Of a stretch of DNA of 64,000 nt, positions 42,085 to 48,491 are shown one piece after another. The translations under genes and the position numbers were made by a program. The notes below the pieces were generated by a model, which did not search any database, was not told the DNA's origin, and worked only from the letters and a program-made list of their open reading frames with translations. The DNA comes from Phaeosaccion multiseriatum (Eukaryota; Protista; Ochrophyta, other classes), in NCBI GenBank assembly GCA_965112735.1, contig OZ218952.1, positions 124,001 to 188,000 on the forward strand. Reading direction: 5' to 3'. How positions within the stretch are numbered: the first letter of the stretch is position 1; every line of letters starts with the position of its first letter.

Positions 42085-45772
<3,688 letters not shown>

Positions 45773-45899
45773 GATGAGTTCTGCAGGGCAGCAGCAGAGG
45801 CTTTCCTTACGAGTTGGAGGCGAGGGGGGGGGGGGGAAATATACCACCAACACGCCCACCCTCTCCGCAGAGGATTTCCGGAACCTTTTCCTTCCGGGG

Positions 45900-46936
45900 G
45901 TGGGTTTACAATAGCAAAAATGGACAGCACCACCCTTGTCCCTGCAGGATACACGGCAGGCAATTTCGATGGAGACAAAAAGGGAGAGTGGGACTTTGCG
46001 ACGGTGGCCATAGACTGAGCTGTGGCGGTGGGAGGGTGCCAAGAGTCTTTTTAACGTCATTCAAACATCCACAATGGTGGACAGCACCACCCTCGTCCTT
46101 GCGGGAAATACGGCAGGCAGTTTCGACGGAGAGAACAATGGAGAGGATGACGTTGTGGCGGTGGCCATGGACCTCATCTCTATACTTCCTATTTTCCGTT
46201 CCGTTCCGTTCTTGTTGTTGTTCTGACCGTCAAGCCTGAGACATGATCTCTCCGCTGGGGGGAATAACTCACCGCCGCCATCACGCGCGGCGCCGTTGGT
46301 ACCAACACCCAGCAACACGGGAAGAAGTGTGCTCGCATCGCCATCGTCAGGAGTGCCAGCACCATCGTCAGCAGCAGCACTGGGGGGGGACGAGGGGCCC
46401 TGCGTCTTCTTGAGCCATACCAGGGAGAAGAATCGGGACTTTGTATCTCTGCTGTGCGACCAGCTAGAGGAACGGAAATTTCCAGTTTCTTTGACGATCG
46501 GAGCCTGAAGGTAGGAGGCCGTTGGAGGAAAGAGATACTCTGTGCGGCTCGCAACACCCCACTTGGCGTGTTCGTGCTGAGTCCGGAATTTGTGCGCAGA
46601 GCGCTGCCTCTTCGGGAGCTACAAATCTCTCTGGACAGGGAGAAAAGCAACAAGCGAGGCGAAGCTGCTCCCCGTGCTCTTCGAGCTGACGAGTGATGAA
46701 TGCTCCGACACCGAGCTACTGCAAGAACACCATTTTTTATTTTATTTTTGGGGGAAGGCGGGAACTGCGATTGGCTTGCTGAGGGGAAGAGGGCGGACCA
46801 GCTTGCGAAGGAACTGCTGGAGAGTGTGAGTGAAGTAGAGTGTCTCCGTACTGACATGCGTGAAAGGTACACTGAGTTGGCCGTGCGAGTGGCCAAAGAA
46901 GTAGAGAAGTCACTCAGAGCGAGAGCTCGAGGCTGA
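45900..46936 (+). pseudogene. Frameshifted relic: EsV-1-12/SBBP-like beta-propeller repeats, Pro/Ser linker, TIR domain
   Basis: STTLVPAGYTAGNFDG..KGEWDFATVAID / TELWRWEG / STTLVLAGNTAGSFDGENNGEDDVVAVAMD. Then VFLSH...DFV..L...L / FFDDRSLKVG..W..EI..A....LGVFVLSPEF...PLREL / LLPVLF split over several frames. Confidence 0.8.
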
Positions 46937-47516
46937 GCAGATTTGATACCTTCAGATAATTTGTTTCTGTTGCCTTCGCTCAGATGTGCTACAGGTGCTA
47001 CCCAGCGCAGAGTAGGTCGGACAGCAGCGGCTGCTATACGATTCAAAGTGACGTGATGACTAGGACGCCTCCCTTGGGAAGGCCCTCCCCCCCCTGTCCT
47101 GGCTGCCTACCTTTAATTCCAAAATGATTAAAACCATGCGTGATACGTTACCCTTGCGTACAGAAAGGGAGGGAGGGGAAAAGGGGTAATGAGGGTAAAA
47201 GGTAATGTATATATATTACACCCTTAAGTGCCATCTATGTAAAAGGTAAAGGGAAAAGAAAGAAAAAAAATCCCCGCATCTGTGAATGAAAAACACCACC
47301 AACGCGCCTAGGACCCCCCCTGGGTTGAACCCCCTTCCTCCATTTGCTCCCCACTCTCTCTCTCCATTCTCTCGAACGCTGGAAGAAAGGGAAGGAGGAG
47401 GAGTGAGAGTAGGGGCTGGGACGAAACTCTTAGGTGTTCACCAAGGAAAAGAGGGGGCGGAGCAGCAGCAAGAGCAGCTTACGAGACAGACAGCAGGAGC
47501 AAACAGGTGAAGAGCC

Positions 47517-48491
47517 ATGTACGGCGGTGTGGGCCTTCCGACGGCCAGGGGAACCGGGACAAATGGGCACATCTCGGGGAATAAGGGCTTTCTGAAGCCT
47601 CAGCAAGTGCGGGAGAGGGTGGAGCGGAATGTGATCGGGGAAGCGCAGGCCTCCAACAGCTGGAAGAACACGAGCGGAGGCCGGAAGGCCAACGCCGACC
47701 TGCTGCAGCATCAAAAGAGGCGCCAGGTAGAGGCCAAGTTGTTTGAGTTGCGGGATGCGATGGCGGAGAGAGGCTACGCGGAGGAGGATATCGACGCCAA
47801 AGTGGAGCACACCAGGAAGCTCCTGCTGGACGGGTTGGCAGAGGAGGAGGTGCGGAGTTCCCCGCCCGCGAGCAGCCAGGCCTTGGCGAACAATTCCCAC
47901 GCCAGGGCTAATCGGAAGAACGACGACAATGCGAGGATGGCAAATGCCTTTGGCCTGGGGACTGATTATCAACCAGGGGACTCCTTCAATGAGGAGGCAC
48001 AAGAGCGCAAGAGACAGCAGCGACAGGCAGAGAAACAGGCCAAGCAGCTGCAGCGAGAGAAGGACGCCAAGTTGAAGGCCAAGAGGGAGAAAGAGAGGGC
48101 AAAGGAGGAGAGGAGGCGGGCTACGGCTGCGTCGGACGAAGACGATGATGGTCAAGGAGAGGCGTCTGGCAAGGCCGAGGGCAGGGAGGATGTGGAGAGT
48201 AGCAGTGCGGAGAGGGCCACAAGTGGCGGTAACAGGCGTGGTCGGGCGAAGAAGAGCAGTAACAGACGCGGACGGCGATCGCGATCTGCCTCTTCCTCGT
48301 CCTCCTCTTCGTCGAGCAGCAGCAGTAGTAGCAGTAGCAGCAGTAGCAGCAGCAGCAGCAGCAGTAGTAGTAGCAGTAGTAGTAGTAGTAGTAGTAGCAG
48401 TAGCAGTAGCAGTAGCAGCAGCAGCAGCGGCAGCAGTAGGAGGGGTGGCAGCAGAAAGGGGGCTCCGGCCAGGAAACGCAAGCGTGCTTAG
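47517..48491 (+). CDS. CWC21: Splicing factor CWC21/SRRM2-like
   Basis: MYGGVGLPTARGTGTNGHI..N, LL.H..RRQVE.K..EL.D; Ser/Arg-rich tail. Confidence 0.93.
   Translation: MYGGVGLPTARGTGTNGHISGNKGFLKPQQVRERVERNVIGEAQASNSWKNTSGGRKANADLLQHQKRRQVEAKLFELRDAMAERGYAEEDIDAKVEHTRKLLLDGLAEEEVRSSPPASSQALANNSHARANRKNDDNARMANAFGLGTDYQPGDSFNEEAQERKRQQRQAEKQAKQLQREKDAKLKAKREKERAKEERRRATAASDEDDDGQGEASGKAEGREDVESSSAERATSGGNRRGRAKKSSNRRGRRSRSASSSSSSSSSSSSSSSSSSSSSSSSSSSSSSSSSSSSSSSSSSSSSSGSSRRGGSRKGAPARKRKRA
48290..48437 (+). repeat. Coding AGY/TCN trinucleotide tract (poly-Ser)
   Basis: (AGC/AGT)n within CWC21. Confidence 0.95.

Follow-up and report, generated by a model that had tools for sequence, protein, structure and literature searches.

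TIR families turn over quickly. In a paper on the ROCO proteins of brown algae, a TIR domain is named only for the TPR-ROCO-TIR of Chondrus (PMC11378527), and the literature searched yielded nothing on propeller-TM-TIR proteins in ochrophytes. The TIR subfamily discussed here is seen in the red alga Chondrus crispus, in Logan assemblies and in Bacteroidota, and its members have a signature in common (FISHAGxDK, FxDxxxLKxGD, GVFILSPEF, WPMxELxCFL, PxLIPVFYRL). The locus that we describe lies in a window of 64 kb, which is the whole stretch of DNA that was analysed. It is very probably an expressed pseudogene, a remnant of about 1 kb of a gene that had a C-terminal TIR domain of this "FISHAG / GVFILSPEF / WPMxEL / PVFYRL" subfamily. 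The features of the locus are listed in Table 1.

Table 1. Features of the TIR relic and its surroundings. Positions are those of the window.
Feature	Position	Strand	Remarks
DEAH-type helicase, first exon	45683-45803	-	spliced X5 contig
Unspliced transcript	45899-47128	undefined	X5 contig; a break of the assembly at a repeat may account for the right end
Blade-like repeat 1 (MDSTTLVPAGYTAGNFDGDKKGEWDFATVAID)	45920-46015	+	followed by TGA 46016-46018; holds the first ATG if the RNA is a + strand transcript
Inter-repeat segment (TELWRWEGAKSLFNVIQTSTM)	46014-46076	+	shares the frame of repeat 2; offset by one base from repeat 1
Blade-like repeat 2 (VDSTTLVLAGNTAGSFDGENNGEDDVVAVAMD)	46077-46172	+	forms a 53-aa unit together with 46014-46076
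Pyrimidine-rich low-complexity tract, (TTCCG)3 + (GTT)3	46173-46226	+	repeat 2 frame reads hydrophobic LISILPIFRSVPFLLLF; TGA 46224-46226
Pro/Ser-rich linker	46227-46403	+	frame of repeat 2 and of the TIR start
TIR piece 1 (VFLSH...LEERK; first strand and helix)	46404-46478	+	TIR_2 positions 1-28; family profile 15-42
Frameshift 1	46470-46481	+	A3T3 run at 46476-46481; downstream frame one base early
TIR piece 2 (EISSFFDDRSLKVGG...GVFVLSPEF...LPLRELQISLDREK)	46475-46648	+	Pfam TIR; family profile 37-104
Frameshift 2	46643-46662	+	at or after the A4 run 46643-46646; downstream frame one base late
TIR piece 3 (AKLLPVLFELTSDECSDTELLQEH)	46659-46733	+	matches the family PiLiPVFYRL..dC strand; family profile 99-123
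Frameshift 3 (putative, from the open frame only)	46731-46754	+	T6/T4/T5/G5 runs at 46733-46754
C-terminal piece, helix-like (GGNCDWLAEGKRADQLAKELL...)	46751-46936	+	open frame of 78 codons; TGA at 46934-46936

A TIR domain split over two reading frames

A recognisable TIR domain is present on the + strand from 46404 to approximately 46733 and is split over two reading frames. Translation of 45900-46940 in three frames reproduced the peptides that had been listed in the preliminary description. The frame of 46227 contains a Pro/Ser-rich stretch that runs into GPCVFLSHTREKNRDFVSLLCDQLEERK, the start of the TIR domain, and the frame of 46268 reads EISSFFDDRSLKVGGRWRKEILCAARNTPLGVFVLSPEFVRRALPLRELQISLDREK, which is the second TIR piece and includes GVFVLSPEF and LPLRELQ. 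The third piece is back in the frame of the first. The pieces were searched separately and never as a stitched peptide. The first (scanned as 46227-46505) matches positions 1-28 of Pfam TIR_2 (PF13676) with an E-value of 0.0086 and a score below the cut-off, and the second (scanned as 46268-46693) matches positions 28-87 of Pfam TIR (PF01582) with an E-value of 4.7e-5 and 23.7 bits versus a cut-off of 21.3. Pfam thus orders the first two pieces consecutively in the TIR model, although their frames differ.

A family profile was built from eight intact relatives and searched against the three frames, in which stops were written as X. Its matches are colinear and alternate between frames: positions 15-42, 37-104 and 99-123. 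The E-value of the central match, 2.4e-20, is circular, since the profile was made from relatives found with the second piece, whereas the colinearity across frames is not. Because the matches are colinear across alternating frames, frameshifts 1 and 2 are demonstrated; at the first of them the two frames overlap in profile positions 37-42. These results, together with the Pfam TIR match above the cut-off, bear out the earlier proposal of a decayed TIR-domain gene. The relic retains the columns that are invariant in the family (F, D, G, F-LS..F and EL). The Glu of its LRELQ, which had been placed at the catalytic position, aligns with the invariant Glu of the family motif WPMxEL (WPMkEL in intact relatives), and the Trp of this motif is a Leu in the relic. 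The C-terminal piece, which is in the frame of the second piece, gave no match to Pfam or the family profile; its best BLAST match is P0002 residues 422-453, with an E-value of 0.89. Its putative homology to the family is deduced from the open frame only.

To collect relatives, the largest piece (46445-46693) was compared by HMMER with the full set of 1.84 billion representative proteins. The scan returned only 14 matches with E-values of 1e-3 or lower (best 6.9e-6), and a TIR domain was present in nine of the nine that were scanned for it. The BLAST identity is 47% over 70 residues for a protein of 500 amino acids from a Logan contig (P0002), 47% over 55 residues for a metagenome protein of 175 amino acids (P0004), and 38-40% over 57-71 residues for two Chondrus crispus proteins of 357 and 350 amino acids (P0003, XP_005716146.1, and P0007, XP_005710537.1). 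A protein of 273 amino acids (P0008) is 38% identical and was assigned to Bacteroidota because of SusD genes on its contig. Between the relic TIR and its best intact relatives the identity is only 32-47%. A metagenome scan with alignment A4 added one fragment of 1.2 kb, and tblastn found no paralogue within the 64-kb window.

The domain architecture was checked in 15 of 21 TIR relatives, made up of nine of the 14 proteins and six of the seven loci from the metagenome and prokaryote genome scans. None of these 15 has the order propeller-TM-TIR, and the only propellers among them are WD40 repeats in NB-ARC proteins. The partners found are short unique N-termini, Roc, NB-ARC-WD40, or NACHT/NB-ARC following a lipoprotein-like leader.

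Six of the TIR proteins are encoded by a single metagenome-assembled genome of an intracellular symbiont of the Amoebophilaceae (WTJV01, loci L005-L010), and all six belong to the "eukaryote-like" TIR subfamily of the relic and open with a lipoprotein-like hydrophobic leader. Five of them carry the TIR domain at residues 130-160; three of these are clearly fused to NACHT or NB-ARC STAND NTPases, and L010 shows a faint STAND match at its end only. The sixth protein is an NB-ARC-TPR protein with a C-terminal TIR domain.

Lesions and transcription of the locus

Contigs from four of the five public runs that contain the stretch were compared with the window over 45000-48000. Three runs (X1, X3, X4) are DNA-like and derive from one sample of study P1, possibly the source of the assembly; the fourth (X5) derives from a different sample and study (P2). 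The X1, X3 and X4 contigs cover at least 45683-47209 and show zero changed letters and zero indels within the relic. In X5, the relic is represented by a single contig of 1,230 nt (45899-47128) that is colinear with the genome and has no other letters, no gaps and no joint. X5 is labelled "DNA?" and is evidently RNA. Its 2,237-nt contig joins five exons of a DEAH-type helicase gene (45000-45046, 45133-45233, 45355-45429, 45525-45569 and 45683-45803), the joints are CT..AC, which corresponds to GT..AG on the - strand, the introns are 86-121 nt long and the start codon lies near 45772. In the helicase gene, the depth of each bin equals the exon share of that bin exactly, and the depth of the introns is thus zero. 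The splicing of this contig and its empty introns identify X5 as RNA free of DNA carry-over. The depth of the relic contig in X5 is 37.7, versus 130.5 for the spliced helicase contig. The locus is thus transcribed, as the X5 RNA includes a colinear contig across it. Contigs drop rare variants and carry no strand information, and this comparison could miss a second allele that is intact, or a spliced isoform of low abundance. In all runs, DNA included, the depth ends at approximately 47424, and continuity with the next gene is not readable from the contigs.

The preliminary description had counted three frameshifts in the TIR domain. Two are demonstrated and are present in both the DNA and the RNA contigs, while the third is proposed from the open frame that follows it. 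All three breaks lie at or near runs of A, T or G, and homopolymer runs are classic sites of long-read errors. This would suit a living gene, in which the frameshifts are errors of sequencing or assembly or else hide small introns. We regard such a gene as very improbable, since the two studies together give four runs, including the RNA run, in which every letter is identical and no indel or joint occurs within 45899-47128. The DNA-like and RNA contigs match the window letter for letter, and the breaks are thus not assembly errors. In addition, two further stops interrupt the + strand, one after repeat 1 (TGA at 46016-46018) and one before the linker (TGA at 46224-46226), and three-frame translation revealed no ATG that opens the TIR frame.

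If the RNA is a + strand transcript, its longest ATG-initiated ORF has 78 codons (78 aa), and the first ATG, at 45920, opens an ORF of 32 codons. The frameshifts in the TIR domain together with the stops leave no + strand ORF above 78 codons, and therefore no TIR protein is possible. An uninterrupted ORF able to give a folded TIR domain is likewise lacking, with two demonstrated frameshifts inside the domain. The relic itself is without protein function. The GC content at third codon positions (GC3) is 0.57-0.65 in the pieces of the relic versus 0.71-0.76 in neighbouring genes, a lowering that would fit relaxed constraint. With its lesions found in contigs from two studies and a transcript across them, the locus has the properties of an expressed pseudogene. 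A dead TIR gene is by itself routine. The present one is a clean case in which "frameshifts" at homopolymers are real in DNA and RNA data, and annotators should not repair them.

The dead gene is still copied into unspliced RNA. Between the left end of this RNA (45899) and position 45803, where the helicase transcript has its 5′ end, the distance is 95 nt. Most simply, the RNA would arise by divergent transcription, as a by-product of a bidirectional housekeeping promoter shared with the DEAH helicase. If the RNA is instead a minus-strand transcript, it would be a tandem unit that ends just upstream of the helicase. A minus-strand transcript might also encode the antisense ORF of 285 codons (46189-47046), as a new gene overprinted on the dead TIR sequence; this ORF stays open across all three breaks of the sense strand, and the RNA contig gives no strand. 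We consider such a gene highly unlikely. The ORF starts with TTG, belongs to no Pfam family and has no homologue in a word search, and its GC content is flat over the three codon positions (0.53/0.60/0.52), in contrast to the GC3 of the real neighbours given above. Moreover, the 64-kb window contains 34 stop-free stretches of at least 250 codons, several of them as antisense pairs. On these grounds (family, homologues and codon-position GC) the 285-aa ORF was rejected as a real gene. A known non-coding RNA was rejected as well: Rfam gave no family match in the relic RNA and only two sub-threshold, miRNA-like chance matches, both outside the relic.

The surroundings contain several repetitive sequences. 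A C17 run in the first helicase intron (45661-45678) and a G13-14 run (45823-45836) lie on either side of helicase exon 1 as an inverted repeat. The G run lies 20 nt upstream of the helicase transcript start, and one X1 contig has four more C. Downstream of the relic, 47208-47239 (wider region 47121-47322) is a 32-nt near-palindrome (...GGTAATGTATATATATTACACCCTTAAGTGCC...). In the DNA-like runs its depth is 30-50 times that of single-copy sequence, which marks it as a high-copy repeat; it is also present in RNA contigs. The window holds one copy, and in contigs of other copies position 47225 is followed by an additional A. In X1, X3 and X4 there are contigs that link 45679 with 47217 and so skip 1,537 nt; the shorter side of the join comprises only 21 letters, and the filler letters vary. 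These are probably other copies of the repeat that lie beside C-rich sequence and were aligned onto the C17 run; a structural variant is the alternative. Further downstream, an ORF on the + strand (47517-48491) encodes a cwf21 domain (E-value 6.9e-13) and a long poly-Ser tail, and is overlapped by an antisense ORF of 356 codons.

The upstream repeats and their relation to the TIR domain

Upstream of the TIR domain, 45921-46015 and 46078-46172 are direct repeats of 95 nt each that are 82% identical without gaps, at a spacing of 157 nt. Two repeats of approximately 53 amino acids linked by TELWRWEG had been described here before. The repeats are real in the DNA, but a frame break between them had not been counted: 157 is not a multiple of three, and repeat 1 is therefore in a different frame from the TELWRWEG linker and repeat 2. 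Between the repeats lie a stop and a frame change. In the repeats, 20 of 32 residues are identical, and the codons that differ comprise 12 non-synonymous and three synonymous differences. The flanks of the two repeat cores are unrelated to each other, which would suit a pair of protein repeats whose loops vary better than a recent tandem duplication.

No Pfam family matched 45800-46015 or 46014-46223 at E-values up to 10, none matched 45920-46015 at E-values up to 1, and the Pfam search found no match of the SBBP model (PF06739) to the repeats. Profile searches of NCBIfam and PDB with the repeats were blank, and a word search with the blade piece among proteins of 38-122 amino acids found no relative. 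No further copy turned up when the 64-kb window was searched by tblastn with each of the two units. Closure of a propeller needs six to eight tandem blades, and the two units present are too few to close one. Look-alikes by ESM-Atlas features were found at 0.86 for the 50-aa ORF and at 0.94 for the 53-aa unit, with 142-146 of 256 features shared versus 170 usual in true members. Nearly all look-alikes of the 53-aa unit are SBBP/NHL propeller clusters, and these clusters are bacterial. The repeat core AG-T-G-FDG..N-G..D...V..D resembles the SBBP consensus, which provides a lead and not a test. Read by eye, the period of approximately 52 residues and the spacing of W and G after each core fit a blade. 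The earlier suggestion of SBBP-like propeller repeats is thus retained in part: the Atlas look-alikes favour it, if weakly, but the profiles of Pfam, NCBIfam and PDB are blank. We treat the "SBBP-like blade" as a moderately supported lead for the repeats and not as membership. An FG-GAP/VCBS identity, suggested by the FDGD pattern, was rejected, as it has no Pfam support and the Atlas look-alikes are SBBP/NHL. The phaeovirus link that had been drawn from the repeats was not supported: the IMG/VR scan with the repeats was blank, and no paper was found that joins SBBP and Ectocarpus. A phaeoviral or other viral origin was rejected after two blank IMG/VR scans.

Between the repeats and the TIR domain lies the low-complexity tract, which is 74% pyrimidine when taken more widely (46173-46234). 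It had been described as intron-like, with CTGAC...AAG. An intron at 46173-46234 was rejected: the tract is retained in the assembled RNA, whose contig runs colinear with the genome, and excision at the sole GT..AG pair that can be placed (46152-46234) does not restore the frame. The peptide LSAGGI, formerly taken as the start of a TM helix, mixes two frames; the TIR frame reads LSAGGN, and the hydrophobic stretch lies at the tract instead. This 19-mer has a Kyte-Doolittle mean of 1.8, and Arg as well as two Pro residues occur in it. Its DNA is of low complexity, and a TGA terminates the stretch. It may be the relic of a TM segment or plain non-coding DNA.

The question is whether the repeats and the TIR domain once formed part of the same gene. 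Within 46014-46505, one and the same frame, interrupted by one TGA, leads from blade 2 through the hydrophobic stretch and the Pro/Ser linker into the TIR start. This common frame is suggestive but weak as a sign of one gene, as by a rough estimate the chance that the two share a frame, and that no more than one stop falls within the 75 intervening codons, is approximately 0.08. The repeats and the relic might instead be unrelated neighbours, the repeats being a local non-coding duplication or a remnant of another gene and the parent a simple TIR protein whose N-terminus was short or disordered. We give this close to an even chance. It agrees with the nearest intact relatives, which have short non-propeller N-termini or NACHT/NB-ARC, Roc and WD40 partners and, among those checked, never SBBP, and with repeats that have neither a profile match in Pfam, NCBIfam or PDB nor a relative in the word search. 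The 12 to three ratio of codon differences and the microsatellite-like character of the tract between the repeats and the linker point the same way. The one frame with one stop from blade 2 to the TIR start argues against it, as do the blade-like period and W/G spacing and the predominance of SBBP/NHL among the Atlas look-alikes of the 53-aa unit.

The reconstruction as one gene is tentative and in our estimate falls somewhat short of an even chance. Here the repeats, as putative remnants of SBBP-like blades, would once have been part of the ORF of the TIR domain and would have been followed by the hydrophobic segment and the Pro/Ser linker; the parent would then be a receptor-type propeller-TM-TIR protein. 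A Toll-like ancestry is weakly hinted at. No signal peptide or complete ectodomain was found, and the RNA and all similarity begin at 45899-45920. Like other TIR proteins, the ancestor would have worked as a NAD-cleaving or scaffolding signalling module. It is unlikely that the parent belonged to an as yet unrecognised ochrophyte family of single-pass membrane receptors, in which the outer part is an SBBP-type propeller and the inner part a TIR domain of the NADase type, and of which intact paralogues persist elsewhere in this or related genomes. If true, this family would be a functional analogue of Toll-like receptors assembled from different parts. The 53-aa blade together with the TIR subfamily of the relic can serve as a search key for propeller-membrane-TIR receptors in related algae, which would become interesting only with an intact copy.

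Comparison with known systems

With SBBP proteins (PF06739), the repeats would share the features that place the 53-aa unit beside SBBP/NHL clusters in the Atlas; unlike SBBP proteins, the relic has only two units and no HMM match at E-values up to 10. In the TIR domain, the proteins of Chondrus crispus share with the relic the FxSHxxxxK start, the FxDxxSxKxG loop, the GVFxLSPEF strand, the xPxxEL helix with its Glu and the PVxF strand. In contrast to the relic they are intact, and their non-repetitive N-terminus of approximately 100-130 residues, without a Pfam domain, contains neither blade-like repeats nor a hydrophobic segment before the TIR domain. The Bacteroidota proteins (P0008 and the TIR proteins of WTJV01) are of the same TIR subfamily (32-40%) and have a comparable order of hydrophobic segment, Pro/Ser/Thr linker and TIR domain. 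However, their hydrophobic segment is a lipoprotein-like leader at the extreme N-terminus with no repeats before it, and most of them continue into STAND NTPases. Animal Toll-like receptors have an LRR ectodomain and a signal peptide, whereas the relic has no LRRs and no signal peptide, but two blade remnants and a candidate membrane span in a dead gene. If the receptor reconstruction is right, the relic would share with them a repeat ectodomain, a single membrane span and a cytosolic TIR domain.
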